In this document: positions 998 through 57,030 of the stretch, piece after piece
Layout: each line of letters opens with the position of its first letter
How positions within the stretch are numbered: position 1 is the first letter of the stretch
The notes under the pieces: generated by a model
The model's database searches: none
What the model saw: the letters and a program-made list of their open reading frames with translations, nothing else
What the model was told of the DNA's origin: nothing
Program-made: the position numbers and the translations under genes
Assembly: GCA_047495785.1 (NCBI GenBank)
Contig: JBLDXI010000010.1
Coordinates: 2,108,001-2,172,000 of the forward strand
Length of the DNA: 64,000 bases
DNA from: Lepidodermella squamata
Taxonomy: Eukaryota > Animalia > Gastrotricha
Direction of reading: 5' to 3'

Positions 998-1892
998 TTA
1001 CATCTTACATGCTGATGCTGACGCGGACAGATCGAACTCATCGATGGAGACTTCTCTGTTCCTGAGAGCTCCCTCGACCAGAGTCTGTAGGAACAACTGC
1101 TCGTCGATGATCGGGTACTGCGGATCGGCTGTGGTTTCGAAATCCATCATTCGCCTCAACGCGCGGCCGCTGAGGTAGTAGAACTTCACCGAGCACAGTC
1201 CGTTCTCGAAAAGCTGGCCATCGTAGCCAGATTTTACTCGATGCACGACATCATTCACTAAGCGCTGGCGAGTTTGTTCGTCAAGGTCGGACAATTTCTT
1301 CCCATCATATTTGTCGAAAGCTTCATTATCAAAATCGATGTCAGATTTTGTTACGACATATATGTATTCCTGGCCCATTTTCTTAGCCTGAAGGCCGTAA
1401 TCGATATCGAACTGTGTCAGCCGGTTGCCAGTCACGATGATCAAAGTCCATGAAGTAATAGCTATCTGGGTAAGGCGCTGGCTTTATTGTGCATTCGACA
1501 ACGCTCACGTTAGACTTTGCGCCTCGAACCAGCGCATTGATAAGGGACGACTTGCCAACGCCGGCTTGCCCGATGATTGCAAAGTTGAAGTCGTCGAGAT
1601 TTAGGCGGACATCTTTCGACTTATGCTTGATTTCCGCCTCCATTCGCTTGCGCTTCGCCTCTTTCTCAGCTTCGATGCGTTGCTTTTCTTCGAGCATCTT
1701 TCGCTTCACAGCTTTGCCGGTTTCAAGTGCCATGTTGTTTTGCAGTTGGGATATTTGGGCTTGGAGTGTTTCAAGTATTTTCTAGTAACAAAGGTCACAA
1801 TAATTTGGAAGAAATTCTTGACATCATACCGAAATCTCCGGCGGGATTTGATATTCACTGACTTGACGGCGGCTTCCGAAAATATTACCCAT
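998..1892 (-). pseudogene. Chimeric IRG-like pseudogene: type A 5' half joined to type B 3' half
   Basis: Exon 1 1892-1830 (MGNIFGSRRQVSEYQIPPEIS), 48 nt GT-AG intron, exon 2 from 1781 with A-type G1 GQAGVGKS. Switches near 1460 to B-type YFMD..IIVTGNRLTQFDIDYGLQAKKMGQE. The G3 (DxPG) segment is missing and there is a frameshift near 1445. Confidence 0.8.
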
Positions 1893-9459: not shown

Positions 9460-10290
9460 CTAAATGATTCTGGGCTTCTGTTCTATGAAGACCGCTCGAT
9501 TCTGGCGAGCTCCCTCGACCAGAGACTGCAGGAACGCCTGTTCATCGATCAGCGGATACCTCGGCACGGATCCAGCTTCGAAATCCAACATTTGTTGCAA
9601 CACATGGCCGCTGAGGTAGTAGAACTTCGCCGAGCCAAGTCCATTCTCACCGAGCAAGCGTTCGTGATCAGTTTTAACAAGTTGTGCGACATCATTCTTC
9701 AAACGCAGGCGGGTTGGTTCGTCAAGTTCGGAAAACTTCTTCCCACCATGTTTTTCGTACGCCTCGTTGTCAAGTCGGTATCAGACTTCGAGCGAACGAA
9801 AATGCACTCCTGGCCCATTTTCTTAGCCTGGAGTCCGTATTCAATATCGAATTGCGTCAGACGGTCCTTGGTAACAACGATCAACGCGTCCATGAAGTAC
9901 AGGAAATTGTCGAGGTAGTACTTGCCAACTGGATGCTTCGGGGTCATGGCTCCAGGGTGGTCCCAGAAAACCTTGCGCCGAAGCTCCTCCTGTGCGAGTT
10001 TTCGCTCAACTTCCAAAGCAGCTAGCTTCTTCTGTTTCTCCTCTTGAAGCTTCTTCGCAACTTCCTCATCTGTCGACACCTGCAACTTCAACTGCAGTTG
10101 ATTCAATTGTTGCCGCATTTCCATGAGTAGCGGCGTCATATCCTGTACATTTACACATCGAAACATTTGCTTGCGGAAAAAAAAGAATAAGACTTGCCAC
10201 AACTTGAACTGGGGCTTGAGATTCCGACTTGGGCGCAAACAAGCTGCATATTTCCTTCACCACCATTGCCGGGACGATAAATTCCGCCAT
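9460..10290 (-). pseudogene. IRG-like GTPase type B pseudogene (B1)
   Basis: Exon 1 10290-10198 (MAEFIVPAMVVKEICSLFAPKSESQAPVQVV) with GC donor. Exon 2 has an in-frame 57-codon deletion removing G1 and switch I (LRRK|VFWDHPG), a 1-nt frameshift near 9770 and a truncated C-terminus. Confidence 0.8.
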
Positions 10291-10943: not shown

Positions 10944-11921
10944 ATGGGTAATCGCGAAAGCACACATGTCGAGTATCGAATCCCGGCAGAATTTTGGGTA
11001 TGCTTCCCAATGCTTTCTTTACAATTGCCTTACTTTTTATACTAGGAATTGCTGCAAAAGCAGCAAGCTGTATTAACGCAACTGCAAACCAACATCACAC
11101 AAGAAATCGACAAAGCTAAGAAGCAAGCGCTGATCGAAGAAAAGCAACGCCTCGAGGCCGAGAAAGAGGCGAAGCGTAAGCGAATGGAGGAGGAAATCAA
11201 GCGAAAAGCGAGAATCTTTGGCATCAATCTCGACGACTTCAACTTTGCAATCATCGGAACAACCGGCGTTGGCAAGTCGACCCTAATCAACGCGTTGGTT
11301 CCGGGCGCGAAGGCTCACGTGAGCGTCGTCGAAGGCACAATGCGACCGACACCTTACCGCAGCCGCAACGTCGTGCTTTGGGACGTTCCTGGTTCGGCGA
11401 CAAAGAAACATCCGGTTGCCAATTACTACGCTGACAACTTTCTGTACCTGATGGATTCGCTGATCATTGTGACTGGCTTTCGTTTGTCCGAATTCGATGT
11501 TGAGTTTGCGAAAGAAGCGATCCGACATGGCCAGAGGGTTGTTTTCGTGAGATCGAAGGCTGATGTGGATCTAGCCAATGATTACTACGTCAAGGAGGAG
11601 AAATATTGGGAAGACTGCCCGGCCAACGACCGAAAACGTGTAGCCGACGCCGTGAGCAGTGAAATTCGAGACAACTACACACGCCAATTTCAGGAATTTG
11701 GCGTTGCGAATATGCAGGATGGCTCTGAGATTCCGTTTCATTTCATCAGTTCGCGGGCTATTGATGAAATCGTCAAAGGCGTTGATTCTAGCCGACGCAA
11801 ATGGCCGCCGTTGGATGAGGAGAAGCTGGTGAAGACGTTGTACGAAGGGCTCAAGAGAGACGGTGCTTTGAGAAGTATTGAAAACTTCAGTCTTCCTCGG
11901 CTTCTTGCTCCGGAAAACTAA
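10944..11921 (+). CDS. IRG-like GTPase type A (A1), 2 exons: 10944-10997, 11046-11921
   Basis: MGNRES start (N-myristoylation consensus MGxxxS); coiled coil; G1 GTTGVGKS, VVEGT, G3 WDVPG, G4 RSKAD; motif order and spacing match IIGP1/Irga6 (VVEVTM..HPY, FWDLPG, FVRTKVD); 48 nt phase-0 GT-AG intron. Confidence 0.88.
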
Positions 11922-18154: not shown

Positions 18155-19027
18155 ATGGAGCGTCAACATCAGCACTTGAATGCAGGTATGCTTAGCCAGC
18201 TTTTCAGCTTGATGCAGGCTAGCGGTTCCGGTATAAATCTGTCTGGCTCGCATGGAGTGTTTCCGACCATCAGCTCTGTTTTCGACCAACCATCGTCCAG
18301 TGGGCTGAGTCATTTTGCCGCGCCCTCGGTTTCGCAAGTGCCAGCAGCTCAGCAGCCAGCAGCAGCTCCGGCGGCTAACAACGCTGACGATGCAAGCGAG
18401 GATATGGCCCTGTGGAATGAGCCGAAAATCAGGTCCCTGTTGGCTAACTGGGCGTTGAATAAGGCTAAGTTTGAGAACAAAGCCCTCCGCCATAACAAAA
18501 TTTGGGGAAACATTGCAAAGGCCGTTAATCAAGACTGTCCGACGCCGCCCGCTGTGAACGGCGAGCAATGCCGCTTAAAACACCGCGACTTGAAGCGGAA
18601 ATACACGGAGACGAAGGTGAAACCGCCATCTGGTTCAGGTACCGCCGAAGTTGTTGACTGGAGCCGAAAGATTCCATATTACGATGCCTTGGTCACAGCT
18701 TTCGAAGGCGACCCCTCGGTTAACCCGCTGATTACGATTAGCACCATCGACGGCGTGAAGAAACCTGAGGAAAAGTCCAAGGTGGAAAAAGCAGAGGCTA
18801 AGAAAACGGCGAAAAAACGTGGTGCTGATGTTGCAAATGAAACTAAAGAGGAGCTGCGAGCTTTGTTCGAGGAGTCGATGTCACTTGAGCGGAAAAAGCT
18901 ACGAATCCTGGACCGAATTGCGACTGCGGCAGAGCGTCGAAGTGGCCTGAAAGAGGTCAGAAAACCGGTGAAAAATGAGCCAATTGATAATGATGTCTCA
19001 ATCTCGTCTTCGTCTGAAGACGAATAG
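18155..19027 (+). CDS. Myb/SANT-like (trihelix/MADF-type) DNA-binding protein of Harbinger 1
   Basis: WNEPKIRSLLANW...KIWGNIAKAV...GEQCRLKHRDLKRKY...PYYDAL trihelix pattern, C-terminal coiled coil, 290 aa ORF. Confidence 0.8.
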   Translation: MERQHQHLNAGMLSQLFSLMQASGSGINLSGSHGVFPTISSVFDQPSSSGLSHFAAPSVSQVPAAQQPAAAPAANNADDASEDMALWNEPKIRSLLANWALNKAKFENKALRHNKIWGNIAKAVNQDCPTPPAVNGEQCRLKHRDLKRKYTETKVKPPSGSGTAEVVDWSRKIPYYDALVTAFEGDPSVNPLITISTIDGVKKPEEKSKVEKAEAKKTAKKRGADVANETKEELRALFEESMSLERKKLRILDRIATAAERRSGLKEVRKPVKNEPIDNDVSISSSSEDE

Positions 19028-19237
19028 ACAATGTGATAGAATGTGATTGAAGAGGAGTGAATAAATACCGTAAACTGGATCTTTAATATAGCCGATAAAT
19101 AAATGAGAAATAATTGATTGTGGCTATGATAACGCGTGATTTTTAATTTCGTAATCTCACTCTTAATTTTTTTTAACAAAATATTAAAAATATAGATATA
19201 TACTGGCTAGCTATTTGGTATTTGCCGCTACTGACCG

Positions 19238-20597
19238 ATGGACGAAACCGATAATTTTTTCGACGAAGTGGGTGATATTGCTGCAATCTATGCCTTGGAT
19301 AATTCCTTCACGATGATGATAACACTCTTATCTATGGCTATTATTGGTCTCAACTGCCGTAATAGATGGAGAGTTCGACACGCTAGAGTATCGAATTTTT
19401 TCGATGTGACTGTACCAGCTTATACCGACGACGACTTTCAGCGACATTTTCGCCTCACACGCGCCTCGGCCGAAAATTTGACTGAATTTTTAGTTCAGCG
19501 TGGCGCATTGCAGCCGAAAAATAGTTTCAGCATTGGCCACCCTCCAATCGACCCTTATATGAAGGTGCTTGTAACTTTGAAATATCTAGGAACGAGCGAG
19601 AGCCTGTTCTCTATTGGGAATCTATTCGGGATTACAACGTCGACGGTGTTCAACATTGTCAGGCAGGTTTGCCATGGAATCGTCGACAATCAGCGACACT
19701 TTATAAGGTGGCCTAGTGATCTGGAAGCAGTGCAGCTGGCTCAGAAATCCCTGGACAGCTACGGGTTCCCAGGTGGCATTGGCGCAATTGACGGCACCCA
19801 CATACCAATAATGGCACCAAACGACAACCCGGAGTCCTACCACAACTACAAGCGCTTCTATTCGATTATCTTACAAGTTTGTCACTGAACCTATACACTT
19901 TTACTGGTTTTAGAGTGCCTAAATTATGAAAAATGTTGCTATAACAGTGAGATCAATTGTCAATTGTCCCCTATATTTGGATTAGGCGGTTGCTGATGTC
20001 AATGGTCGCTTCATCGATGTTTTCTGCGGCATCCCCGGTCGGTCCAACGATCGAGGTGTTTTCAACCGAAGCCCGTTGTTACGATCGATAACTGAGAACA
20101 AACCGGCGTACTTTTCCAGTCCGAATTTTCACATTTTGGGTGACGGGGCCTATCCGCTGCTCGATTGGTTAATGATTGGCTACTCGGCGCAGGAGATAGC
20201 GACAGAAAATCCAGAAGGTGTTGAACGCTGCGAGTTGTTTAATACTACTTTGTCATCAGCTCGACAGGCTGTTGAACGGGCATTTGGCATGTTAAAGGGA
20301 CGATTCAGGCGATTTATGACAAGAGCTAACAACTTTGACGTTGTAGAAATGTCATATTTTGTTGTTGCCGCCTGTTGCCTTCATAATTACTGCCTAGCCG
20401 ACGGTCTCGGTGCCGCTTTTCTGCAGGAAATCCAAGCCGCCGAAGAAGCCGATGAAGAGGCTGTCGATCATCCCGGAGAGGTTCAAGCTGTTGGAAATCC
20501 CATGGAGGTGGAAAACGATGTACAGAACAATAATTTGTTGGGTGAAAATAAGCGTTTCCAAATCACGGAATATTTGTTTCACAACAGAAATATTTGA
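19238..20597 (+). CDS. HARBI1-like DDE transposase of Harbinger 1, exons 19238-19876 and 19986-20597 (~416 aa, apparently intact)
   Basis: FQRHFRL, GAIDGTHI, SIILQ|AVAD...PGRSND, LGDGAYP, RQAVERAFGMLKGRFR, CCLHN; phase-0 GT-AG intron. Confidence 0.88.
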
Positions 20598-22283: not shown

Positions 22284-22577
22284 TCATGCTGACGCGGGCA
22301 GCTCGAACTCATCGATGGAGACTCCTCTGTTGCGGCGAGTTCCATCGACCAGACACTGCAGGAACAACTGCTCGTCGATGATCGGGTACCGTGGCTCAGA
22401 TGCGGCTTCGAAATCCAACATTCGCTGCAGTGCCCGGCCGCTGATATAGTAGAACTTCGCCGAGCCAAGTCCGTTTTCGGAAAGCTGGCTCTCGTAGTTG
22501 GATTTTACCCGATGCGCGACGTCATTTGCCAAAAGCTGGCGGGTCGATTCGTCAAGTTCGCAAAACTTCTTCCCACC
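22284..22577 (-). pseudogene. IRG-like type B C-terminal fragment (B3-like)
   Basis: GGKKFCELDESTRQLLANDVAHRVKSNYE...DEFELPASA*, nearly identical to the 3' part of 32454-33466; 5' part lost at junction ~22578. Confidence 0.8.
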
Positions 22578-22619: not shown

Positions 22620-23570
22620 CTGTTAGCGAATTTGCTACAATTTGAACATTGAATGGCTACGGTTTAACGGCTTGGAACCAGCTTGAAATGAACTATCCAC
22701 TGGCGCTGTACAAAATCGAAACAATCCAGGAGGCTTGATTTTAGCGCTGGAACCTCTGAAACCAGCTTTAGTGGTGCAGGTAATTATAGACCCATTCATT
22801 TTTGCAAAATCGAAGCTTCGAATCGAATTTCCCATTCCTTATCGAAGTTTTACCAAGGGTATCACCGGAGGAATGTGAAATTTACCAGAGAAATTCCGGA
22901 GAAGTCCGATGGTAATTATTTGTTAATCATCGGTAATTTACCTGGTTGGAACGAATATCTGCAGAATTATTTTTTATGAAAAATTCGAAGATCCAAGATC
23001 ATAATGTATATTCATAGAACGGATATTTTCTCCTGCTTTGGGGTGTAAAATTGCATATAATACTTGGAAAAATCCTACTTTCCAGTGCCCAACATTGGGA
23101 GGGATCGAGTACGAGGATAAGAAAATGAGAAATGAGAAAATGATCCAATTTCGGCAATTCAATACTTTCCTCAGGTCAGGGTTAAAAATGATTCCAACCA
23201 GTGTGCGAAGTAGGATCCGGGAGCTGATGTGTTTTCGAGCATCCAGCCGAACAAACCAAAGGATCCCCCCTGTGGTTTTTTCAGCCTTCCTCTGGCCCGG
23301 ATCCCTGATTCCAACTTCGGATATTTATAAATCGGATATTTTTAGCAAAGTCTATTGTGTTGAGCCCAGCCAACTGTATCACAGTTCGCAAAGCACAAGT
23401 TCGGATAGTCATCGAAAGTTCAACTCGGGCCAGCTTATGATATTCGAAGACTCAAAAAGCTCTGATGATCATCAACATTTTTACTTCAAAGTGATCAAAG
23501 TGCAAAAGATGAGAAAACACTTTCAAGTTGCTATAGACTTGAAACTGAAGCTAGAATAATGGAATTGGGA
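22620..23570 (+). repeat. Duplicated 3'-flank block of type B genes; homologous to ~62747-63597
   Basis: Collinear similarity, e.g. gaaatgaactatccactgg, ttaccagagaaattccggag, gaaactgaagctagaataatggaattggga. Confidence 0.75.
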
Positions 23571-23577
23571 ATGGAAT

Positions 23578-24330
23578 GGCGGGTTGGTTCGTCAAGTTCG
23601 GAAAACTTCTTCCCACCATGTTTTTCGTACGCCTCGTTGTCCAAGTCCGTATCAGACTTCGAGCGAACGAAAATGCACTCCTGGCCCATTTTCTTAGCCT
23701 GCAGCCCGTATTCAATATCGAATTGCGTCAGACGGTCCTTGGTAACAACGATCAACGCGTCCATGAAGTACAGAAAATTGTCGAGGTAGTACTTGCCAAC
23801 TGGATGCTTCGGGGTCATGGCTCCAGGGTGGTCCCAGAAAACGAACGACGGATTGAAGAAGCTTTCGTACTTGGACGCCGTTCCAGTTGTTTCGACAACT
23901 CCAACTGCAACGTTTTGGCGAAGAAACGCGTTCAGCAGCGTCGATTTGCCGTTGCCGGATCCGCCGATGATCGCAAAGTTGAACTTGCTTGTATCAAGGT
24001 TGTGCGATTTCGCCTTCTGCCGAAGTTCCTCCTGGGCGCGCTTTCGCTCAACTTCCAACGCAGCTAGCTTCTTCTGTTTCTCCTCTTGAAGCTTCTTCGC
24101 AACTTCCTCATCTGTCGACACCTGCAACTTCAACTGCAGTTGATTCAATTGTTGCCGCATTTCCATGAGTAGCGGCGTCATATCCTGTACATTTACACAT
24201 CGATACATTTGCTTGCGGAAAAAAATGAATAAGACTTGCAACAACTTGAACTGGGGCTTGAGATTCTGACTCGGGCGCAAACCAGCTGAATATTTTTTCC
24301 AACAATACTGGGACGGATAGTATATTCCAT
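23578..24330 (-). pseudogene. IRG-like type B gene lacking its C-terminus (B2)
   Basis: Intact G1 GGSGNGKS, GVVETT, DHPG and RSKSD, but deleted after KKFSELDEPTR. GC donor at exon 1; the homologous ATG (24330) is out of frame. Confidence 0.75.
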
Positions 24331-25522: not shown

Positions 25523-26494
25523 ATGGGTCCCCGCCATAGCACTGTGTATCGAACCCCGCCAGAAGTTTTCGTAAGCTTCCCAATGCTTTCTTTACATTTG
25601 CCTTACTTTTTATACTAGGAATTGCTTCGAGAGCAGCAAGCTGCAATGAAGCAACTACAAACCAACATCACACAAGAAATCGACAAAGCTAAGAAGCAAG
25701 CGCTGATCGAAGAAAAGCAACGCCTCGAGGCCGAGAAAGAGGCGAAGCGCAAGCGAATGGAGGAGGAAATCAAGCGAAAAGCGAGAATCTTTGGCATCAA
25801 TCTCGACGACTTCAACTTTGCAATCATCGGAACAACCGGCGTTGGCAAGTCGACTCTCATCAACGCGTTGGTTCCGGGCGCGAATGCTCTCGTGAGCGTC
25901 GTCGAAGGCACAATGCAACCAGCACCTTATCGCAGCCGCAACGTCGTGTTATGGGACGTTCCTGGTTCGGCAACACAAAGGCATCCGGTCGCGAATTACT
26001 ACGCTGACAACTTTCTGTACCTGATGGATTCGCTGATCATTGTGACTGGCATTCGTTTGTCCCAATTCGACGTTGAGTTTGCGAAAGAAGCGATTCGATA
26101 TGACCAAAGTGTTGTTTTCGTGAGATCGAAGGCTGATGTGGATCTTGCCAATTATTACTACGTCAAGGAGAAGAAATATTGGGAAGACTGCCCGGCCAAC
26201 GACCGAAGACATGTAGCCGACGCCGTGAGCAGTGAAATTAAGAAGAACTACACAGGCCAATTTCAGGAATATGGCGTTGCGAATATGCGGGATGGCTCTG
26301 AGATTCCGTTTCATTTCATCAGTTCGCGGACTGTTGATGAAATCGTCAATGGCGTTGAAGCTACCCGACGCAAATGGCCGCCGTTGGATGAGGAGAAGCT
26401 GGTGATGGAGTTGTACGAACGGCTCAAGAGAGACGGTGCTTTGCAAAGTATTGAAAACTTCATTCTTCCCCGGTTTCTTGCTCCGGAAAACTAA
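25523..26494 (+). CDS. IRG-like GTPase type A (A2), exons 25523-25570, 25619-26494
   Basis: MGPRHSTVYRTPPEVF exon 1; all G motifs intact; close paralog of A1. Confidence 0.88.
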
Positions 26495-27602: not shown

Positions 27603-29076
27603 TTAATGAAAAATGTGGTGTACGATGAGTTGGCGAAGCTGCTCGCGCCTGGCATGGCCGTCCTGGTTGTTGGGGCCTTGTTCAGGCACTTCGTTCATGT
27701 CGTCGGCGTCTTCTTGCTCTTGTGCGGCCAAGTTGGCCAAAAACTCGACGTCGTCCGCGTTTTGCATCGGATATTCGTCTTCGCCTAGAAGACCGATGTT
27801 GTGAAGGGCGCAACAGGCGAGGATGAAGCTGACGCAGCGTTCGATGTTGCGAAACTCGAGGACTGCGAGTCGCCGCCATTTGCATTTCAGCAGCCCAAAC
27901 GCTTGCTCAATAATGACCCGAGCTCGGCTGATGAGCTTGTTGAACCTTTCTTTCGAACGTCCAAGACGACCAATCCGTCGATAAGGCGTGATGCACCACG
28001 GTCGAAGCGTGTAGCCGCCATCAGCGATGAGGAATCCGTCGTCGCCATAAACAACCTACTCGAATAATACATTATAGGAAACGTTGAACTGTAGTTTCAT
28101 TTTCGAACCTGAGGAGTGTTTTCTGAAGCCAGTCCAAGAGGCGAATTTCGCAGAACACGGGCGTCATGGGCCGAGCCGAAAAAGCCGGCGTTTATGTCGA
28201 GGAAAACCATTCGCCGGTCACAGACAGCCTGCATAGAGATGCAGTGATATCCGTCCTTCCCTGAGTAGTAGCGCTCGGGCTGTTGCTTGCGTATCGGTCT
28301 GATGCGAATTTTCGTGACGTCGATCGCACCTCTCACATTCGGAATGTGGCTTTAGATTTGCAAACATTTTAGTAAAAAATCCGATTTTATTATATTTAAT
28401 ACAAATTTAGACTTTGTTAATTATTCATTAATAGAAATTTTTAAATCCAGAACTGCTTTACTAGAATTCCGATTATTCCTAAAATCGAGAACTATTTTAC
28501 TAATATTTTGATTTATTTTTCTAAAATTCATTTATTTTTCTAAATTTATTAAAAAAATTAACAAAATGAGAACTAGACTCACCACTCGTGAGAGAAGCCG
28601 TTAGAGACAAACGCGACGTCAGCAGGTGTTGAAGGCCATTTGATAAAATCGGACGAGAGGCGCGAAATTCGCGAAGATAGCTGCATGATGATACGAAATG
28701 CAGTTGATTGAGAAGTTCCAAATCGATCGGAGACGGTGCGCAAAGGTTCGGTATTAGCTGCATACCAAAGAAATAAATGTAGCTTTTTATTGAGAGACAT
28801 GGCCGAAAGTGGTTCGTCGATTTGTTGCTGCTCGAGCAGGTTCAAAATCCGGGCAACTGTTGGCCGGCGAAGACGAAAAGTCGCTCGAAATTGTTCGTCT
28901 GTCATGGCTTGAACCGTGATTTCGAAGAAGTTGTCGACAATTTGCCGGGGTACCCCTCGAACCCGTTCACGATCCAAGTCGGCTTGTGCCAGGAATAGTA
29001 GGAAATCTTCATCGTCATCAGATGATGATGAGTCGATCACCTCAAACAGAAAGTTCAAAACCCGAAGTTCATCCAT
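27603..29076 (-). CDS. HARBI1-like transposase of Harbinger 2 (3 exons)
   Basis: FRATFRL, HTH region, GAIDVTKI, CISMQAVCD, GSAHDARV, IADGGY, RVIIEQAFGLLKCKWRRL, CCALHN; introns ~28580-28350 and ~28108-28055. Confidence 0.8.
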
Positions 29077-29257
29077 GATGAAATTCTAACAAAAAAACAA
29101 AAAGCATATTTAGAACTAGATTGAAAAAAAGCCTTTTTAAGTTTATTATACGCCGAGTTGAAAAACGGCCGACAAGTAATAGTGTAGGATAATTCGCAAA
29201 GCAAATATACAAAACAGGTATACAAAACGAAACACAATTTTATCAAGATGACAGAGT

Positions 29258-30350
29258 TCAGTCTTTTTTGGGCGGGATTAACTGGGCGCCAAGTTCGCGG
29301 AACATTTTGAGCTTTTCCTCGTGGCGGCGATTTTTATCCTCGCGGCTAAGCCGCATATTTTCATTGATCGCCTCGGCGATTAGCGACGAAACTGAAGGTC
29401 GCTTGAGCTTGTCGACCTTGGGTGTATCAGGGCCAGATGAGCTCACCGAGCTAGCAACGCTATCGCATCGTACCGGTTCAGCTTTCTGAAAACAGCAAAA
29501 ATCAGTAAGTAATATTTTCAATAAATTTCGAAGAATTTGACGATTAATTTGATGAAAATTAACTAACCTTTTCGATTTTGGCTTGGAAACCAGCACTGAT
29601 AACGACTTCGGGATCCAGCTCCTTATCACCCATGACGCGCTGGAACCACTCCATGTTCGCCATCTTCTTGGTCTTCGTGCCGCTAGTGTGTCGATTGTGG
29701 TCACGGACCACTCGATAACGTGACATCAAGTTGCGAAATTTTCCTGCTACGTCGGCGCCGGTAGTTTTCAGTCCATAGTTCAGGTTGAGGCCATCCGAAA
29801 TCAGCTTGTAACCGGCGTTCGGGTTCTTCAGCTTGCCGCTGAACTTGCCCAAATTATCTTCGTAAAGGCCGAGTAAGGCCTTCGTGACTTCCTCCCGCTG
29901 TCTCTTCGTCGATCCAAATAAAAAGAGTGACGTAACAGCTGTCGCCTCGACTTCTTCTTCGGTTTCGACCTCGGTATCGGTAGTGTCACCTTCGGTTCGC
30001 TGGCGGGTAGTTTTCGGCTTTTTTGACTTCGATGCTTTGGCGCGTCGTTTCGGCTTTGCTTCGGTGGCGGCTACGGCTGGCTGAGGCTGAAGCTCAGGTT
30101 GTAGCAATCTCGGCGTTTGAGACTGCTGAGTTGCAGGTTGCGGCGGTAAGAATTGGTAAGAATTCGGGACTTGCGAATGCGAAGCACCATGTTGGAAAAA
30201 ATCGGCTGGCGGCAAGTTTTGGTATAAACCCGCCGAATACATTGAAGGGAAAGGTGATTGATGATTCAGAGAAGATGCCATCATGCCAAGCGTACGAAAA
30301 ATAGCTGCCAATTCCTCAGGCGTTAATTTGGCCAAAATTGAATGATTCAT
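29258..30350 (-). CDS. Myb/SANT-like accessory protein of Harbinger 2, exons 30350-29568, 29485-29258
   Basis: TKALLGLYEDN...YKLISDGL...VAGKFRNLMSRY...WFQRVM, C-terminal coiled coil RRHEEKLKMFREL; phase-0 GT-AG intron. Confidence 0.72.
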
Positions 30351-31876
30351 ATCAAAAGCAAATTGCAATCAAATTCGGCAATGAAAGTGCAATTATTCGT
30401 CGTCAAACCTTACCTGAACTTTCGCGCCTTTTCAAATTATTAACGCTTGATCAACTTCATGGTCGGGCGGTGTAATTTTACCATTTTACCCCTTTTCTTT
30501 CTCTTCAATTACCTCGGTATAGGCGGTTCCGCCAAGGGTTCCGCTCGGCTTTTGCGCACTGCTGTGAGCGCTTAGATGAGTGCGCGGTGATAAGGCGCGT
30601 CGTACGCGCGCGCTCGTACGCCCCCCTAGGCGTACGACGAAAACTGCATCGTACGTACAACTTTTCCGTCGTACGTACGACGCACATACGACGCGCTGAA
30701 ATACAGAATACGACGAAAAGTGTGCGCGCATCATCGTACGTACAACACATGAAAAACACGGGCACACTCGCCCAAGTCGTGCGCACTGTTATTTATCGCT
30801 AATTTTACCGCGCGCGCAGTTGTCAAAGAGTAACTTAAACTTTTTGTGGCGGCTTTTATGCCAGAATGAAGAGAATTTAATCCCCTATCGATTGAATATA
30901 GGGTTCTCGCTCGAAAAACTGAAAGGGAAAAAGTTTTACGTGCACTGAAAAATTAGGGCGGGTGACCTCACGCGAGCGCACCACCAAGTAAAAATTGTGC
31001 ACGTCAAATGTTTAATTCCCAAATTTCAATCGTAACAAATCTATATTCAATCGATAGAGAATTCAATTTACTTCAATTCGATGTAAAAGCCGACGTGAAA
31101 TTCATAGATTGCCTTTTGATTTCAGTTCAAAATGAGCTGACCAATAGGAGCGCGCGCAGAGCCGTAACGTAGGCGGGCCTGAAAATGTGCTTTTCATGGA
31201 GTTAATGCCTCGCACTATGTAGTCGGGCCACGTTTCCTTCGAGTTTCCCTTAAGCTGTATATGCAAACAAGATAAAGAGGGATTAAGGTGAACAGCTAAT
31301 TTAAACTAGCGCACGCATTTCCAGGTGGCGTCAAGGTTGTTGGCATAAGACCCTCTCTACAATTTAGGTCCTCCCTTTAATTATTTCAAATGCCTCGCAA
31401 CCCTCTCTACTAAATAGGTCCTCCCTTCTAATTAGGTCCACACTTATAATTCGGTATTTACGGTATAATACAATAATATTAGTTTTATTTAGCCTCTTCT
31501 AGGACCCGAACATTCCCACCATTTAACGATGATATAAAGAAAAAACATAGACAACTCGATACAGATCGGAAAGTAACGATCTTCCTATAGTAAATTAATT
31601 TCACACCAAAACGTGAAAAAGTGGGCACGCGACCTTTATTTTCATTCACTCATCGCCCCATCCGCCCATTGTAATTTTTTCGATTTTTAATTATTTTCAA
31701 AAATTCTCAGAGAAAACGTTTCATTTCCCAAAAATTCCAAACAAATTTTCCGGAATACTAGAAGCGCTCCTCTATCGAATGAGTCCTGTTTCATGAGACG
31801 GTTTTTTCAATTGTCTCAAAGTTGGTCACTTTTACCTTTACGAAAAATCGCCATTTTAAGAGCCTTTCCGGGCGGT

Positions 31877-32453: not shown

Positions 32454-33466
32454 TCATGCTGACGCGGGCAGCTCGAACTCATCGATGGAGACTCCTCTGT
32501 TGCGGCGAGTTCCATCGACCAGACACTGCAGGAACACCTGCTCGTCGATGATCGGGTACCGGTGCCCAGATGCGGCTTCGAAATCCAACATTCGCTGCAG
32601 CGCCCGGCCGCTGATGTAGTAGAACTTCGCCGAGCCAAGTCCGCTGTCGAAAAGCTGGCTTTCGTAGTTGGATTTGACCCGATGCGCGACGTCATTTGCC
32701 AAAAGCTGGCGGGTCGATTCGTCAAGTTCGGAAAACTTCTTCCCACCACGATTTTCGTGCGCCTCATTTTCCAGATCGATATCCGACTTGGAACGAACGA
32801 AAATGCACTCCTGGCCCATTTTTTTCGCCTGTAGCCCGTATTCAATGTCGAACTGTGACAGCCGGTTGCCAGTCACGATAATCAACGCGTCCATGAAGTA
32901 CAGAAAGTTATCCAGGTAGTACTTGCCAACTGGATGCTTCAGGGTCATGGCTCCAGGGTGGTCCCAGAAAACAAACGACGGGTTGAAGTAGCTCTTGTAC
33001 TGTGATGGCGCCTCCGTCGTCTCAACAACTCCAACAGCTACGTTTTGGCGAAGAAACGCATTCAGCAGCGTCGATTTGCCGTTGCCGGATCCGCCGATGA
33101 TCGCAAAGTTGAACTTGCTTGTGTCGAGATTGTGCGATTTCGCCTTCTGCCGAAGTTCCTCCTGAGCGCGTTGTCGCTCGGCCTCCAGTGCCGCCAGCTT
33201 ATCCTTTTTCTCTTCTTCAAGCCGCTGAGTGACTTCTCTATCTTTGCTAACGTGCATCATCAACTGCAGCTGTTCCAACTGCTGCTTCATTTCCATAAGC
33301 TGCGGCGCCATGTCCTATGCACAGAAGTGCATACTCTGGCTTGAATGCGGAGATATGAATAAAGACTTACCACGACTTGAACAGGGGCTCTAGATTCTGA
33401 GCGTGGCACCAACTGTTTGACTATATCCACCACGGCGGGGATAACTACGCTTTTGAAAACGTCCAT
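32454..33466 (-). CDS. IRG-like GTPase type B (B3), exons 33466-33371, 33314-32454 (~318 aa, intact)
   Basis: Exon 1 MDVFKSVVIPAVVDIVKQLVPRSESRAPVQVV with GTAAGT donor; G1 GGSGNGKS, GVVETT, FWDHPG, FVRSKSD. Confidence 0.88.
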
Positions 33467-46362: not shown

Positions 46363-47607
46363 TCAATAATCTGAAGCAAGAAACTTGGGAAGTACGAATT
46401 GATCAATATTTCCAGTGTGCGACTTTCATGGGGGGATGGGGGGGATCATCCCCCCCAGCTCGGCCGGGCCAAACAGCATAATGACAATTTATCCCACTCT
46501 TTTGTTAATTTTGGAAGGTTCTGGGGCGTGTTTTAGTGGAAAATTTCCAAAATTTTCTCGCTTCGCTCGGTTATTAGCCGAAATGACTCGTCATTTTGGC
46601 AAATACAGCAAACAAATTTTTTCCATCCCTGGGAGCTCGGGGATCGAAGATCGCACCCTGAATATTTCGGAAAGCACCGTCTTTCTTGAGTTGCTCGAAT
46701 ATGCCCTTCAAAAGCTCCTTCTCATCCAACAACGGCCACTTGCATCGGCTGGCTTCAACGAATGAAGGATGATTTCTTTGACGGTTCGCGAACTGATGAA
46801 GTGAAACGGAACCTCTGAGCTATCCTTCATTCTCGCGACGTTGTATTCCAGGAATTGGTCTCTGTAATTAGTCTTGATTTTAATTCTGACGGCGTCAGCT
46901 ACACGTTTCCGCTCGTTGACAGGACAATCCTCCCAATATTTATTCTCCGAGTCGTAGTAATCGTTGGCCAGATCCGCATCCGCCTTCGACCTCACGAAAA
47001 CAACACTCTGGCCATGCAGAATCGCCTGTTTCGCAAACCCAACATCAAATTCCGACAGGCGATTGCCAGTCACAATGATCAACGCGTCCATCAAGTACAA
47101 AAAGTTGTCGGCGTAGTAACTCGCAACCGGATGCTTTTGTGTTGCCGAACCGGGCACGTCCCAGAACACGACGCTGTTCGCATTATCAGCGTAAGGCGCT
47201 GGCTTCATTGTTCCTTCGACAACGCTCACGTGAGCCTTCGCGCCCGGAACCAGCGCATTGATCAGGCTTGACTTGCCAACGCCGGCTTGCCCACTAATTG
47301 CTAAGTTAAACTTGTCGAGATTGAGGCCGAAATCTTTCGCCTTCCGCTTGATTTCCGCCTCCATTTGCTTGCGCTTAGTCTCTTTCTCAGCTTCGATGCG
47401 TTGCTTTTCTTCGAGCAGCTTTTGCTTTACGGCTTTGTCGGTTTCAACTGCCATGTTGTTTTGCAGTTGCGATATTTGGGCTTGGAGCGTTTCAAGCATA
47501 TTCTAGTAGCAAAGGTCACACTAATTTGAAAGAAGTTATTGGCATCATACTGAAATTTCTGGTGGTACTCGATACTCAATGACACGTCTGCTTCGCCCGC
47601 CACCCAT
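46363..47607 (-). pseudogene. IRG-like GTPase type A (A3), disrupted near its 3' end
   Basis: Exon 1 47607-47551 (MGGGRSRRVIEYRVPPEIS), exon 2 from 47502; G motifs intact. Frameshift near 46765 and a hAT MITE before the last codons (IDQFVLPKFLASDY*). Confidence 0.8.
46413..46660. mobile_element. hAT-type MITE inserted in the A3 coding sequence
   Basis: cag(t/g)gtgcga TIR; 8-bp TSD aatatttc at 46405-46412 and 46661-46668. Confidence 0.85.
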
Positions 47608-47908
47608 GATGATGAATAAAGAGCAACAAATCAAACTCAAATACCTAAAATGCAAGAAATATTTTGAATAATGTAAAAATTGAAATTAGCACAATATTTA
47701 GCTGGCTATAGCAAAGCATACCGTCATTTGGGGCTATCGCAGGATAAGGGGCTATTCGGTAACAAGTTTGTTCAATTAGTAGATTGAGGCTTCTGAAAAT
47801 ATTACCCATAATAATAAGCTGGGAAGAAGGAAGAAAATTCAAACTTGAAATATTTGGAAATTATTGCAGAATTCGCAGACATCATGAGCCCGATCCCGAT
47901 AGGAATAG

Positions 47909-48094
47909 TATATCGTTAGCGGCGCGCCAAAACAACCACTTAGATGATTCATTCGATCGTACTTGAAGTCGCCGAACGTAATGATAAAGTACGATAGGCC
48001 ATTTGAGCACTGATTTTTTCTACTCTCGATCGTACTATCCTTATAAAATCTATAAATAGTAAAGTGGTTGTTTTGGCGCGCCGCTAACGATATA
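47909..48094. mobile_element. MITE upstream of A3
   Basis: ~33 bp TIR tatatcgttagcggcgcgccaaaacaaccactt. Confidence 0.8.
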
Positions 48095-49175
48095 AATGTT
48101 GCCATAGTTCCGCTTTGTAGCATATTTTGCATACACGTGGCTTTTATAGGAAAAACAATACCGAATATTTCATTGGTATTGAGATCAATAGAGTAGATAG
48201 AGAAAAAATCAATAGAGAAAACACCGATTCGACGCAAATATGAATCACAATTTTCATTGATGCAAAACGTTCAAGTGGTGGAGCAATCGCGTGCCAGCAA
48301 TAAATAATCACTGGCATCACTGGCACCACTAAATATCAGAATATCTATTTTTTATCTTTGCAACCGAAGTTTCAGCTCTTGCGATAAAACAATATCTATA
48401 TCTTCAATAGCAACTGACGCCGGCACTTACAAGTGCAGAAAAATGTGTTTTAGGGTCAAGTGTTTTAGTGGTTTCGAAGGCCGACTAAACCAAGTGGTTA
48501 GTTTTCTAAATTTTCGTAAAATAAATCAGCTGGTAGAGATTTACGCTGGCTGCCATAATCAACAAAAATATTCCCGGCACCAATTTTTGTCGATTTTCTA
48601 TCGAATTTTTAAAATGGCAATTTCCCGACGAAACTTGGGCTCGTTCGATAGATGATGAGTAGACGAATTCAGTCGAATTTACTTTCATTTTTTCTGATAC
48701 GGTGGCATGTAAAATTTCGGCCCGTGAACTTGAGCCACTTTCGTAGGTTTGCCAAAAAAGAGTTGTTTTTAAAATTGAGTAGAAAATCAACCAAAATTGC
48801 CGCTGAAGCAAATTTTAGTGATTCGGATAGCTCGTGAAATTCCCTGCGCAAGCCCTAATTTTAACAAGAATTAAGCTCACTAACCATTTTGTTAAATCCA
48901 TCTTCAAAAACGATAATTTTTCAAGCATGCGATCTCCTTCTCGTTAAAAGAGCGTGAAAAGTAAACAATTTTATACGCTATGTGAGAACTGTAAGTTTCC
49001 GATCTTGTATTGCTTATAACCGCACTCTAATTTCGTCATAATACATCATCAATTAGCTCTAAACCCGATATCGATTCTCCCGTATTGCCTAGATAACAAT
49101 AATCCTTGCAGCTCGCATCGACCCACTTTTATCTAGGCTTTTATCACGCTTTCTAAAAATTCATTTGTTCAGCAC

Positions 49176-51422
49176 ATGGCTGCCTGTGGAAATAAGCAGT
49201 GGAAGTTTTCTTCAATTTATGAGTTCAAAGAGGAGAAGGCATTAGGAAAAGGCGCTTTCGGCTCAACTACGCTATGCCGTCGAAGGAATGACGTAGCTTT
49301 ATACGCTGTCAAGGCAGTCGACCTCACCAAAATTCGAAATGCTCACCCGGAGAAGCCACGTCTTGCCGAAAGACTAGTGGAGCTGAGCGAGGAAGAGGTT
49401 AATTGTCTTCTCATTTTTTAATAGTTACACGATCTACATTCCTTTTCCCGCGTTTTTATAGCATGAAAAACTGGCTAAATTGTCTCACCCAAATATAGTA
49501 TCTGTTTACGGAGCATTTACGGGTAATTTTTCTAATACGTATCGCCTGTAATATATGTGAATATTTATTGACAGAAAATGGAAAGAAATTCACCACAGAG
49601 ACAGGAATATACGAGTCACTGATGTATTACCTTGTCATGGAATACTGCTCGGGCGGGGACTTGGATGGTTACATGAAGAAAGCAACGGGTCCCATTCGCG
49701 AAAGTTTGTTGTTGAAATGGGCGCGGCAACTTGCTTCTGCGGTTGCTACGCTGCACGAAAATCGAGCTCTCCATCGAGATATAAAGCCGAAAAACATTTT
49801 CCTGCAAAAGGGTGACATAAAACTTGGGGACTTTGGTTTGGCGAAGATTTATGACGAGTAAGAATACACTATTCCTTTGCTCAATTCAGTTTGTTAACAA
49901 CGCCTTGCAGCTCTTCAAGCAGCACCCAGCAATCCGTGTACAGCTCCAGGGTTGGTACCGTGCTCTATATGGCGCCTGAATTATTTGGTAAGGAGAAGCA
50001 CTCACACGAGAGCGATTGGTGGGCTGTGGGGGTAACTTTATTCGAGTTGGCTAATTTCTATTTGCCGGTTAGTTTTTGCACGGCTAAAACTTGATCTTAC
50101 CGTTATGTAAATTTTTCAGTTCGATTCAATACTGGATATCACATCGTAAGTTGTAACGACCAGGCAAGCTTTGCGTAATATCAAATTGATACATTTTCAG
50201 AAAAGATCCGAAAAGTTTTGACGCTTCGCGCAACTATTCGCCCGCATTTCTGAACACCATTTTGGACATCATTTCTGCGAAGGATGCATCTAAACGTGTC
50301 CGACCGCAAGCTTTGCTCGACGGAACGAACGGGCCGCTGCAAATTATGGATACTGATTCCGTTGCGATATCAGATCCAATTACTGCGAAAATGGTACGTT
50401 CAAATTCGGTCAAATTTTGTTTTAAGCTGGCAGTAGAATATGCTATTGAGTACCTCACTACTATTTTCGGCGAGGCCAATGCCAATGATTAATTCCATAT
50501 TTGCTTCACCTGGCCTCCTTAATTTTACTAGCATTCTTCTAAAATGTAACAGGCCCAATTAACGCTACTGCAAACCAACATCGCGTATGAAACCGACAAA
50601 GCTGTGAAGCAAAAGCTGCTCGAAGAAAAGCAGCGCATCGAAGCTGAGAAAGAGGCGAAGCGCAAGCGAATGGAGGCGGAAATCAAGCGAAAGGCGAAAG
50701 ATTGCGGTCTCGATCCCGACGACTTGAACATTGCAATCATCGGACTAGCCGGCGTTGGCAAGTCGACTCTTATCAATGCGTTGGTTCCGGGCGCGAATGC
50801 TCTCGTGAGCGTCGTCGAAGGCACAATGAAGCCAGAGCCTTACCGGAGCCGCGCTGCTAACGCGAACAGCGTCGTGTTTTGGGACGTTCCTGGATCGGGG
50901 ACGCCACGGCACCCGGTCGCAAATTATTACGCTGACAACTTTCTGAACCTGATGGATTCGTTGATCATTTTAACTGGCCAGCGCGTGTCCGAATTTGACG
51001 TTGAATTTGCGAAGGAAGCGATTCGACAAGGCCAAGTCGTTATTTTCGCGAGGTCAAAGGCTGATTTGGAACTAGCCAACTATTACGCCCATATCACGGC
51101 AAAATCTTGGGAAGAGTGCCCGGCTAACGACCGAGAACATGTAGCCGACGTTGTAAGACACAGAATTTCCACAAATTTTCTAGCCATGTTCGAAGAAGCC
51201 GGCATTGCGGGAATGAAGGATGGCTCAGAGGTTCCGTTTCATTACATCAGTTCGAGGACCGTCAAAGAAATTGTCGATGGCGTTGAAGCCAGCCGATGCA
51301 AGTGGCCGCTGATGGATGAGGAGAAGCTGCTGAAGACGTTGAACGGGTGCGTCAAGAGAGACGGTGCTTTGCGCAGTATTGACAACTTCATTCTACCTCA
51401 GCTTCTTGCTCCGAAAGACTGA
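49176..51422 (+). CDS. Predicted NEK-like Ser/Thr kinase - IRG-like GTPase fusion (~603 aa); exons 49176-49397, 49462-49522, 49575-49857, 49911-50067, 50120-50145, 50201-50393, 50553-51422
   Basis: Six GT-AG introns with compatible phases (0,1,2,0,2,0). Kinase motifs GKGAFG, AVK, HPNIV, MEYCSGGDL, HRDIKPKNIFL, DFG, APE, DWWAVG, LPF, DASKR. Last exon is a type A IRG (GLAGVGKS, DVPG, RSKAD) with no Met-Gly exon of its own. Both domains are high confidence; the joining splice is inferred. Confidence 0.7.
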
Positions 51423-52980
51423 TTCTAGGACAATTAAGGTCAAGTTGTGAGAACTATTCATTCTTTTTCGTTTGAATATTATTACAATGTGTTTCTGTTT
51501 ACTTCCATCAGCTTGAATTTTTGAATAAAAATTGCAGTCTTGCCTCATCGTTGAAGCCAAGTGAATGCCTTTTAGCAAGCGCGTCACCAACATTTCGAAA
51601 GGGTCATTCAGTTGAAGGTGCCAAGGCGCAGCTCGACGTGTGAGGTTTACATAGCGTGAAGGCCACCAGGGCTTCATAGGACGACCAAGGCTCAAGGGAT
51701 CAAAGGCTTAACTATATATGTATAAAATGATTATATTGTGTCCTATCTATAATTAATGATGTGATTATGATATATATATCCCCTTCCATTGACTCCACGC
51801 GAGGACCGAGAGCACCATATAATGGTGGGTGGTAATAAAATGATAAATCTGAAATTTTGCCAAACTTTGCTAAAATCCTCGTTCGATTGGACTAAAATTT
51901 TAGAAATTGGTGATGAAATTGCTTTTTTGTGATGTGTAAGCAAAGTGATATTTTGCATCCGATATCCGATGTGACTTATGGCAATTATTTTTCTTACTAG
52001 AGGGTTCAGATTTAGTTTTCAACAGTTCAACAGTTCAACAGAAACCCGCTCCAACAAATTCCTCATGGTTCCTCATGGAGGTAACAAACTTATCATCGGT
52101 ACTTAATAACGAAGACATAAACCGGAAATCATCAAAGACATGGTGTGAAGTACAGGGGTGCCGGGGTGTCGCGACAACCATGAAAAACCACAGGGGGACT
52201 CATTGGTTCCTTCGGCTTGGTTCTAGAAAACAAGTGGTAAACACCTCAGCTTTCGGATCCTACTTCGCAAACTGATGAAAGAGCTAGCTTCAAATAAGCT
52301 AATTGTAAAAAGCTGTATTTAGTGTTTTCTTGGACCAATTTCCGAGAAACAATGAAACACACCGATCCAGCAAAGTGGAAATCATATTTTTTTGAAATTG
52401 TTAAATTTAGTTATCGGTATATATACAAATACACATGATCACGCAAACTGCTGCAAACTTATTTTCAATTAAATAATAAATAATCAATCCAAATGTTACC
52501 ATACAGCTTTATTCCCCTTCTCACTTCTTTCATTCGAAAACCAAAGCTTCATAAAAGAGAAAACAACAACGTTCGATTAACTGAAGCTGATACTTGTAGG
52601 AGTAATTAATTATAATAGATTAAATTAGGTACAAACAACAACAATCTCTCAATGCTTGTTGTGACGTTCCACAACTGTTACAATACTTATATAAACTGAT
52701 ATCAATAGACAATAGACCATGAATACCGACCTGCTATTGTATGAGATAGACTCTTGACTTTCCATCATAAAATTAATATTTGAATAAAAGAAGTGGTAAG
52801 ACATCCTAACCCGCTTGGTGAACCCTCACGATGATCATTACCAGAAACAGATCATGAAACCCTCATTGCATACTGTGAAAGAAGGAGAGGCTCACCGAAC
52901 TCTTCACCGAATCTCAACACAGAACTGGCTCGGAAGATTAAAAAATTCAAAGCAGAGGCTCTCAGATCATTCTGCCACGT

Positions 52981-53989
52981 TCATGCTAACGCGGGCAGCT
53001 GGAACTCGTCGATGGAGGCTCCTCTGTTGCGGCGAGTTCCATCGACCAGACACTGCAGGAACACCTGCTCGTCGATGATCGGGTACTGCTGCTCAGATGC
53101 GGCTTCGAAATCCAACATTTGCCGCAACGCGCGGCCGCTGATGTAGTGGAACCTTGCCGAGCCCAGTCCGCTGTCGAAAAGCTGGCTTTCGTAGTTGGAT
53201 TTGACTCGACGCGCGACATCATCTGTCAAACGCTGGCGGGTCGGTGCGTCGAGGTCGGAAAATTTCTTCCCGCCAAACCTCTCGTAAGCTTCGTTGTCCA
53301 GGTCGACGTCAGACTTCGAACGAACGAATATGCACTCTTGACCCATTTTCTTAGCCTGCAGACCGTATTCAATGTCGAACTGTGAGAGCCGGTTGCCAGT
53401 CACGATGATGAGCGCGTCCATGAAGTACAGGAAATTGTCCAGGTAGTACCTGCCAGCGGGATGCTTCGGGGTCATGGCTCCAGGATGGTCCCAGAAAACC
53501 AACGAAGGGTTGAAGAAGCTCACGTACTGCGACGGCTTCTCCGTCGTCTCGACCACGCCAACAGCAACATTTTGGCGAAGAAACGCGTTCAGCAGCGTTG
53601 ATTTTCCACTCCCAGGGCCACCGATAATTGCAAAGTTGAACTTGCTTGTATCGAGGTTGTGCGATTTCGCCTTCTGCCGAAGTTGCTCCTCAGTGCGCTT
53701 CCGCTCAGCCTCTCGTGCCGCAAGTTTCTCCTTTTTCTCTTGTTCAAGCCGCTGAATAACTTCCTTATCTTTCGATACGCGCATCATCAGCTGCACTTGG
53801 TCCAATTGCATCTTCATCGCCGTAAGTTCGGGCGTCGTGTCCTGTACATGAAGTCAAGTACAATCACTGGAATAGGAAACGATAAGGGCTTACCACGGCT
53901 TGAACAGGGACTTTCGATTCTGAGTGTGGCTGCAGCAGCTGCTCAAAGATTGCCAGCCCGGGGCCGGCTAAGGCTGTCGAAAAGTTCAT
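52981..53989 (-). CDS. IRG-like GTPase type B (B4), exons 53989-53894, 53841-52981 (~318 aa, intact)
   Basis: Exon 1 MNFSTALAGPGLAIFEQLLQPHSESKVPVQAV; G1 GGPGSGKS, GVVETT, DHPG, RSKSD. Confidence 0.88.
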
Positions 53990-56037: not shown

Positions 56038-57030
56038 ATGGGTGGTATTTTCGGAAAACGGCGTGCTGTCATTGAGTATCGACCCCCGCCGAACATTTCG
56101 GTATCCTGCCAATAATTTCTTTCAAACTAATGTGACTGTTGTTGCCAGATAATGCTTGAAACACTCCAATCCCAAATAGTGAAATTGCAAAACAGCATCG
56201 CGCATGAAAACGACAAAGCTGTGAAGCAAAAGCTGCTCGAAGACAAGCAACGCATCGAAGATGAGAAAGAGGCGAGGCGCAAGCGAATGGAAGCGGAAAT
56301 CAAGCAGAAGGCGAAAGATTACGGCCTAAACCTGGACAAATTCAACTTCGCCATAATCGGGAACGCCGGCGTTGGCAAGTCGTCGCTTATCAATGCGCTG
56401 GTTCCGGGCGCGAAGGCTCACGTGAGCGTTGTCGAAGGAACAATGAAGCCAACGCCTTACCCTAATAACGCGTACAACGTCATGTTCTGGGACGTGCCCG
56501 GTTCGGCAACGAAAAAGCATCCGGTCGTGAATTACTACGCTGACAACTTTCTGTATCTGATGGACGCGTTGATCATTGTGACTGGCAATCGCCTGTCTGA
56601 ATTTGATGTTTCGTTTGCAAAGGAAGCGATCCGACATGGCCAGAGAGTTGTTTTCGTGAGGTCGAAGGCTGATGTGGATCTAGCCAGCGAATACTACGAC
56701 TCGGAGAATAAGTATTGGGAGGACTGCCCAGTCAATGATCGAAGACGTGTAGCTGACAGCATCAGAAATAAAATCAAGACTAATTACAGAGACCAATTCC
56801 TGGAATACAACGTCGCGAGAATGAAGGATAGCTCAGAGGTTCCGTTTCACTTCATCAGTTCGCGAACCGTCAGAGAAATTATCGATGGCGTTGAAGCCAG
56901 CCGATGCAAATGGCCGTTGTTGGATGAGAAGGAGTTTATAAAGGGGCTGTATGAGCAGCTCAAGAAAGACGGAGCTTTTCGAAATATTGATCAATTCATT
57001 CTTCCCAAGTTTCTTGCTTCAGATAATTAA
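56038..57030 (+). CDS. IRG-like GTPase type A (A5), exons 56038-56100, 56149-57030 (intact)
   Basis: MGGIFGKRRAVIEYRPPPNIS exon 1; G1 GNAGVGKS, VVEGT, WDVPG, RSKAD; 48 nt intron. Confidence 0.88.

Follow-up and report, generated by a model that had tools for sequence, protein, structure and literature searches.

Analysis of a 64,000-nt stretch of the genome of the gastrotrich Lepidodermella squamata (assembly GCA_047495785.1, contig JBLDXI010000010.1, positions 2,108,001 to 2,172,000 of the forward strand; hereafter the window, in whose numbering all coordinates are given) reveals a transcribed gene at 49176-51422 (+) that joins a protein kinase in frame to an IRG-like GTPase. The catalytic cores of both halves are intact, and the gene is devoid of the putative lipid-anchor exon found in its closest paralogues, which belong to one (type A) of the two GTPase subfamilies, type A and type B, that make up a cluster in the window. 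For the explanation that we favor as a whole, including a function for the product as a fusion protein, we estimate a probability of roughly 0.6.

The seven joined exons form an open frame of 1812 nt (603 codons plus TGA) without internal stops, and the six introns separating them are all of the GT..AG kind (64, 52, 53, 52, 55 and 159 nt), the sixth being three times as long as the others. Exon 1 (49176-49397) contains the ATG start, the glycine loop GKGAFGS (49245-49265) and the beta-3 Lys in AVKAV (49305-49319), and suffices by itself for a Pkinase match in Pfam (1.1e-4). The end of helix C and the HPNIV strand are encoded by exon 2 (49462-49522, 61 nt), followed by the hinge, the catalytic loop HRDIKPKN (49772-49795) and DFG (49829-49837) in exon 3 (49575-49857; Pkinase 3e-22), and by the Ser-rich activation loop, APE (49969-49980) and the helix F motif DWWAVG in exon 4 (49911-50067; Pkinase 1e-11). 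After the 26 nt of exon 5 (50120-50145), exon 6 (50201-50393) completes the kinase C-lobe (RVRPQALL, 50295-50318) and adds a 25-residue tail. Intron 6 (50394-50552), which ends in a new acceptor (AG at 50551-50552), leads into exon 7, where a charged helical or coiled-coil segment (50553-50705), common to all type A copies in our alignment, precedes the IRG-type G domain, a short C-terminal helical part and the stop codon (50706-51422, TGA at 51420-51422). An earlier note on this DNA, made from the sequence alone, had described six kinase exons splicing in frame with intact catalytic motifs and a phase-0 junction between 50393 and 50553. The exons rebuilt from the window agree with that description at every coordinate, and the junction is indeed in phase 0 on both sides, with the donor AAA ATG/gtacgt and the acceptor taacag/GCC CAA where they had been placed.

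Evidence that this gene model is used by the cell comes from public sequencing data. Two runs contain the stretch, X1 (2015, labelled 'RNA?') and X2 (2024, DNA), with 56% and 97%, respectively, of the words sampled from it; the organism codes of the two runs differ, but the X1 pieces listed match the window without differences. Cover by X2 is collinear from 47600 to 52600, extends over introns and intergenic DNA alike, and has no joints. X1, on the other hand, joins 49397->49462, 49522->49575, 49857->49911, 50067->50120, 50145->50201 and 50393->50553, always across GT..AG, and its cover is absent from the flanking intergenic DNA at 48101-49102 and 51608-52442. The joints, the skipped introns and the uncovered intergenic DNA, all of them unlike X2, establish X1 as transcript data. 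A retrocopy in the DNA is an unlikely source of the X1 joints, since X2 would then be expected to show joints as well, and it shows none.

The junction between the two halves of the gene is contained in a single 361-nt X1 contig that starts at the end of exon 4, spans exons 5 and 6 and includes the first 72 nt of exon 7. It matches exon 6 at 50201-50392 with no differences, and its depth (26.2) is in the range of the neighbouring kinase and GTPase contigs (18-28), so that the 50393->50553 splice foreseen in the earlier note is present at a depth like that of the flanking exons. The same note had named two transcript structures that would speak against a fusion, kinase transcripts reading through to the stop at 50492 and polyadenylated before 50553, and an IRG exon spliced to another first exon. 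In the first case, the unspliced frame of exon 6 does reach a TAA (50490-50492) inside intron 6, but no X1 contig extends past the exon 6 donor into the first 45 nt of the intron, as can be deduced from the depth of 19 in bin 50272-50438, which equals 26.2 times the exonic fraction of that bin. A sequence scan of intron 6 found neither AATAAA nor ATTAAA; the sole AATAAA 3' of the fusion stop lies at 51524-51529 (+), and X1 cover ends at 51525. In the second case, the IRG exon was found to lack a start exon of its own. The fusion mRNA is, in our assessment, very probably real.

The kinase half, of the Ser/Thr type, contains GKGAFGS, AVK, the helix-C Glu, HRDIKPKN, DFG, APE, DWWAVG and the subdomain-XI Arg, and thus presents the glycine loop, VAIK Lys, HRD, DFG, APE and helix-F Asp by which eukaryotic protein kinases (PF00069) are recognized. 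Judging by these motifs the kinase looks catalytically competent, and its Ser-rich activation loop is also long. Comparison with solved-structure relatives exon by exon did not lead to a kinase subfamily, because the best relatives differ between exons: SGK and GCN2 for exon 1, GCN2, NEK1 and IKK-beta for exon 3, and RSK and GRK for exon 4. Within the 64-kb window the kinase is single-copy.

The affiliation of the GTPase half is better defined. Exon 7 matches IIGP (PF05049) with an E-value of 6.2e-19 and 68.8 bits, against a curated cut-off of 24, and its 289 residues are arranged as a charged helix of about 50 residues, a G domain and a helical tail of about 110 residues. The nucleotide-binding motifs are all recognizable: G1 GLAGVGKS (50742-50765, conforming to GxxxxGKS), the switch-I Thr in VEGTMKP (50814-50834), G3 DVPG (50883-50894, DxxG) and G4 SKAD (51054-51065, xKxD), the last of which starts with Ser, not with Asn or Thr. 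In a 59-sequence family alignment the fusion GTPase retains 5/5 invariant and 9/9 near-invariant residues. Its closest solved sequences are Irgb6 and Irga6 (E about 1e-12, over the G domain only), and an AlphaFold (AF2) model built on the 59-sequence alignment reaches a pLDDT of 90.2 and a pTM of 0.85, with helices at exon-7 residues 2-12 and 16-50 (pLDDT 88-98). The top 36 hits of a Foldseek PDB search with this model are all IRG proteins (Irga6, GM4951, Irgb6, Irgb10), and the fold matches include the Irga6-ROP5 complexes 4lv5 and 4lv8. TM-scores against the PDB IRGs reach about 0.5 (by query) and about 0.39 (by target), and the IIGP profile match spans positions 31-158 of 375, that is, the G domain only. 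The latter two values therefore point to a compact IRG-like GTPase and not to a full p47 protein; the architecture of the latter, some 400 residues with a large helical domain at either terminus, was not found here. The "complete IRG domain" of the earlier note stands in the sense that exon 7 is a complete copy of the compact IRG-like type of this genome, and falls in that only its G domain fits the Pfam profile.

Compared with the mouse IRGs (p47: Irga6/IIGP1, Irgb6, Irgb10, GM4951), the fusion GTPase thus has a G domain that is IRG-type by profile, sequence and fold, including the GKS P-loop, and as in the mouse the G domain and tail are encoded in one long exon. The family is likewise clustered and fast-duplicating, and the free paralogues in the window have an MGxxxS-like N-terminus, as does Irga6 (PMC1297648). 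Unlike the mouse proteins, the window GTPase, at 289 residues, is missing most of the IRG helical domain, has SKAD instead of TKxD at G4, and carries a Ser in place of the large hydrophobic residue that IRGs show at the position of Ras Q61. Its host, furthermore, is an invertebrate without interferon, and the fusion copy bears an N-terminal kinase.

The structure of the locus also provides a view of how this gene may have come about. The four other type A copies (exon 2 at 11046, 25619 and 56149 on the plus strand and 47502 on the minus strand) all have an upstream ATG GGT exon, located at 10944-10997, 25523-25570 and 56038-56100 (+) and at 47551-47607 (-). These first exons measure 48-63 nt (16-21 residues), start MGNRES, MGPRHS, MGGIFG and MGGGRS, and are separated from exon 2 in 4/4 copies by exactly 48 nt of intron, ending in TACTAG in three of them and in TGCCAG in the other. 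A myristoylation signal of the form MGxxxS occurs in many IRGs, though not in all. In the mouse it is found in Irga6 and ten others (PMC1297648), and the Met-Gly exon of the free type A copies looks like an N-myristoylation signal of the same kind. Most of the distant short homologues of the GTPase family likewise start with MG, and type B copies start within their long exon, without Met-Gly. The fusion protein, in turn, begins MAACGN and has no MGxxxS signal, and neither ATGGGT nor its donor GT was found upstream of exon 7 in the fusion copy. What has been kept, in register, is the old acceptor TACTAG (50526-50531), now followed by CAT TCT TCT AAA ATG TAA; the acceptor in use sits 21 nt downstream. 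Two further claims of the earlier note are hence borne out, namely that the other type A copies have a Met-Gly mini-exon some 48 nt upstream and that the ancestral acceptor has been disabled by an in-frame TAA, which occurs after five codons (50547-50549).

The identification of the retained old acceptor within intron 6 is firm at the sequence level. A decayed remnant of the Met-Gly exon may in addition lie around 50436-50475, and the evidence for it is suggestive only, given the weak similarity of intron 6 to the 5' regions of the paralogues (45-60% identity, local-alignment z of 0.2-3.9 against shuffles). The length of the intron fits an origin from an upstream spacer, the old exon and the old intron. 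The frame in which exon 6 would be read through (50394-50492) is also that of the putative remnant (..AIEY.. against ..VIEY.. in the paralogues), a coincidence that could be due to chance (1 in 3) or reflect a previous stage at which the fusion was made by read-through. An in-frame splice into a long IRG exon without its own start exon, as observed here, is the mark of fusion by exon capture, and this origin can be considered partly shown: the lipid-anchor exon would have been lost, the acceptor shifted by 21 nt, and the upstream kinase gene would have captured the IRG coding exon. The mechanism has precedents. The mouse transcripts Irgb2-b1 and Irgb5-b4 arise by in-frame splicing from an upstream gene into the long coding exon of an IRG gene that is not transcribed separately and lacks its own promoter (PMC1297648), and the same in-frame exon capture is seen in zebrafish irgg-irgq1. 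Such tandem IRG-IRG transcripts slightly correct the earlier note, in which vertebrate IRGs were called stand-alone GTPases; they are not so in every case (PMC1297648). They differ from the present case in that their upstream partner is another IRG unit, whereas here it is a protein kinase.

No precedent was identified for the domain combination itself. When 1.84 billion representative proteins were scanned by HMMER for relatives of the GTPase part, 1491 matches were obtained, the best of them 35-39% identical and including vertebrate tandem IRGs, a tardigrade IIGP1-like protein, a fungal protein and short metagenomic proteins. The best 150 of these 1491 relatives (phmmer) contain no kinase, and a Pfam scan of 20 long relatives found IIGP units only. 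The nearest named ESM Atlas clusters consist of short IIGP proteins, none with Pkinase, and two of them are mostly from Rotifera. A profile of 532 columns, combining tandem IIGP proteins and window copies and directed at fusions of about 600 aa, gave 10 matches, none with a kinase, and constitutes a weak test. A word-based protein search with the GTPase gave no match at 159-506 aa in a collection from which this genome and its close kin are apparently absent, and the GTPase was not found either in a genome contig collection whose blank says little, since only bacteria and archaea are represented in it. Searches with kinase exon 3 produced 80 metagenome loci, all of them generic kinases of at most 59% identity and with no IIGP-like ORF nearby, and, in the protein collection, fragments of at most 49% identity; four Logan contigs encode unrelated kinases (32-37% identity) and no GTPase. 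In the literature we found no description of an IIGP-Pkinase fusion. As far as can be tested with these limited searches, a kinase and an IRG-like GTPase in one chain thus represent a new domain combination, and the remark of the earlier note that the architecture was not known to have been described holds to the same extent, on the strength of the best 150 IIGP relatives, the Atlas clusters and the literature.

Our favored explanation is that the fusion protein is a kinase switched by GTP or by oligomerisation and active in a cell-autonomous pathway of defence or stress response. Oligomerisation-coupled signalling, like the decoy or sensor role treated below, had been proposed in the earlier note and is still inferential. 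The module formed by the helix and the G domain would still bind GTP and pair with itself or with membrane-anchored type A paralogues; GTP-dependent assembly would then bring kinase domains together, allowing them to cross-activate on the Ser-rich activation loop and to phosphorylate targets at the site of assembly. This logic is borrowed from the ROCO proteins (LRRK2, DAPK1 and the Dictyostelium Roco kinases), in which a GTPase and a Ser/Thr kinase also share one polypeptide and the nucleotide state or dimerisation of the G domain is the likely control of the kinase; by analogy, the same might apply to the fusion. Unlike the ROCO proteins, the fusion has its kinase N-terminal to the G domain, reversing their order, and its G domain is of the IIGP family; no Roc or COR family match was obtained for the GTPase part (Pfam, E <= 0.01), which places the protein outside the ROCO family. 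The likeness between the two is therefore at most convergent.

Several observations weigh against this explanation. The protein tree puts the fusion GTPase inside type A without resolving its position, and there it is the longest type A tip (0.27 as opposed to 0.07-0.12). Pairwise dN/dS between its exon and the free type A copies is 0.40-0.48 (dS 0.4-0.5), within the 0.28-0.55 seen among the free copies themselves, and speaks in favor of the explanation, yet when distances are apportioned to branches by a three-taxon split the fusion branch has a dN/dS of 0.5-0.8 (bootstrap limits of about 0.3 to 2), compared with 0.15-0.43 for the free copies. The GTPase half is therefore under weaker or different constraint, and a relaxation of constraint is possible. 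These selection figures refer to the GTPase half only, the kinase being without a paralogue in the window. No orthologue or second kinase-IRG fusion was detected in the protein and metagenome searches. The mechanism of kinase activation is, as stated, modelled by analogy. The transcript evidence comes from one RNA-like data set, labelled 'RNA?' and available as contigs, a form of data that hides the proportions of isoforms, the real 5' end and any rare read-through products. The most upstream X1 contig (144 nt), moreover, matches the window from 49140 onwards, and the 27 letters upstream of that point could not be placed locally. They may correspond to an exon more than 1 kb upstream or to a trans-spliced leader, and a splice near 49137 would leave 13 open codons upstream of the ATG at 49176, with a possible N-terminal extension of the protein.

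These points bear most directly on the idea that we are dealing with a conjoined or read-through transcript without fusion function, either tolerated as a by-product or recently fused, close to neutral and heading for decay. The two genes are adjacent and on the same strand, a match in phase has a prior chance of 1 in 3, not every triplet puts the branch dN/dS (0.5-0.8) clearly below 1, and the searches yielded no orthologue; a stand-alone GTPase might even be started, in principle, from an internal Met (KRMEAE, 50664-50681) that precedes the P-loop. Nonetheless, depth in the junction contig is like that of the exons on either side, X1 has no contig that extends beyond the donor, the first exon of the GTPase copy is gone, and no poly(A) signal is present in intron 6. 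The probability of a 289-codon frame staying open by neutral chance on the fusion branch, considering substitutions alone, is 0.002-0.05, and the catalytic residues of both domains are intact. On balance, we consider a functionless transcript improbable, and the switched kinase outlined above preferable to it.

A different view accepts the fusion as real and assigns another task to its GTPase half. The helix and G module might serve only as a dock that brings the kinase to free paralogues of type A or type B, which would be phosphorylated, for instance in switch I, and thereby held off or reset, making the protein a host counterpart of ROP18 acting on Irga6 or an analogue of the regulatory GMS-type IRGs. 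Toxoplasma ROP18 phosphorylates switch-I threonines. As with ROP18 and ROP5 on Irga6, a kinase fold is here coupled to an IRG G domain; in that system, however, a parasite effector acts in trans to disarm a host GTPase, while in the present gene both parts are host-encoded and in one chain. Co-assembly is plausible given the location of the fusion within the A/B cluster and its identity to type A (67-70%, against about 40% to type B). The GTPase family has a nearly invariant switch-I Thr, and binding of a kinase-fold protein to an IRG G domain is exemplified by the two Irga6-ROP5 complexes. That the G domain of the fusion evolves faster would also fit docking better than catalysis. Conversely, the fusion keeps all its GTP-binding residues, which would be superfluous for mere docking, and the proposed substrates are conjectural. 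Docking onto the paralogues is hence unlikely, though it strikes us as a stronger candidate than a transcript without function.

Still less probable, and indeed doubtful, is an integrated decoy in the manner of plant NLRs, in which the kinase would be a bait for pathogen effectors aimed at host kinases, with the IRG-like module reporting the attack. This would suit a rapidly duplicating, immune-resembling family full of pseudogenes and transposons, a divergent kinase that fits no clear family and a fast-evolving fusion branch. It squares less well with the fact that decoy kinases often lose catalytic residues, when the fusion kinase keeps all of them, and with the lack of any known pathogen or effector for this host; the proposal is pure analogy.

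The broader interest of the switched-kinase explanation stems from the position of the IRGs as a textbook cell-autonomous resistance system that has been studied almost only in mice. To our knowledge, little has been established about the links of IRGs to signalling or about their roles outside vertebrates. In invertebrates the IRG system has been regarded as missing (Bekpen et al. 2005). It is conceivable, albeit tentative, that a non-vertebrate animal has built a self-contained immune sensor and effector by wiring an IRG-like switch to a kinase. If so, GTP-driven assembly on a target membrane would be turned into phosphorylation directly, and the gene would exemplify a new class of immune GTPases, convergent with ROCO/LRRK and mirroring the conflict between ROP18/ROP5 and IRGs; it may also be one of several captures of IRG-like exons by other modules in this genome. 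Since the fusion sits beside free, probably lipid-anchored paralogues, it offers a testable model for the gating of a kinase by GTP binding or oligomerisation, the same question that is posed by LRRK2, in a much smaller protein. The locus further documents a stepwise origin of the kinase-IRG architecture. What is presented here is a new combination within known kinds, IRG-like immune GTPases and exon-capture fusions, observed in one species and one RNA data set.

The rest of the cluster shows ample signs of turnover. Long exons of type A start at 11046, 25619, 50553 (the fusion) and 56149 (+) and at 47502 (-), with a type A fragment at 2-199, and type B copies occupy 52984-53817 and 32457-33311 (-). 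The type A copy at 46625-47502 (-) is frameshifted near its C-terminus, its main ORF ending at 46708 and the last 46 residues or so lying in a different frame at 46625-46759, and is probably a pseudogene. Two type B copies on the minus strand are damaged. In the first (9520-10238), the helix directly abuts ...FWDHPG within 9699-10238, the P-loop and switch I having been deleted; the second (23531-24280) stops after the G domain, and its C-terminal part is found about 1 kb away, at 22296-22574. A type A fragment at 1025-1760 (-) is 73% identical to the type A sequence of the fusion over its first 97 residues and about 28% identical over the rest, and may be chimeric or represent a third type.

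Transposons of the PIF/Harbinger type are inserted in the cluster at 18155-20597 (+) and 28579-30368 (-), with one ORF containing a Myb/SANT-like domain (PF13837) and a second containing DDE_Tnp_4 (PF13359), and they may drive its rearrangements. An unrelated conserved gene in the vicinity of the cluster is hinted at only by an exon-sized ORF at 7193-7696 (-) with a weak ANF_receptor match (PF01094, 8.4e-6). Around the fusion gene itself, X2 depth climbs to 22,251 at 47934-48100 and to 2,233 at 52109-52275, compared with about 47 elsewhere, and the gene is therefore flanked by high-copy repeats; X1 transcript contigs are also found over 47767-48100.

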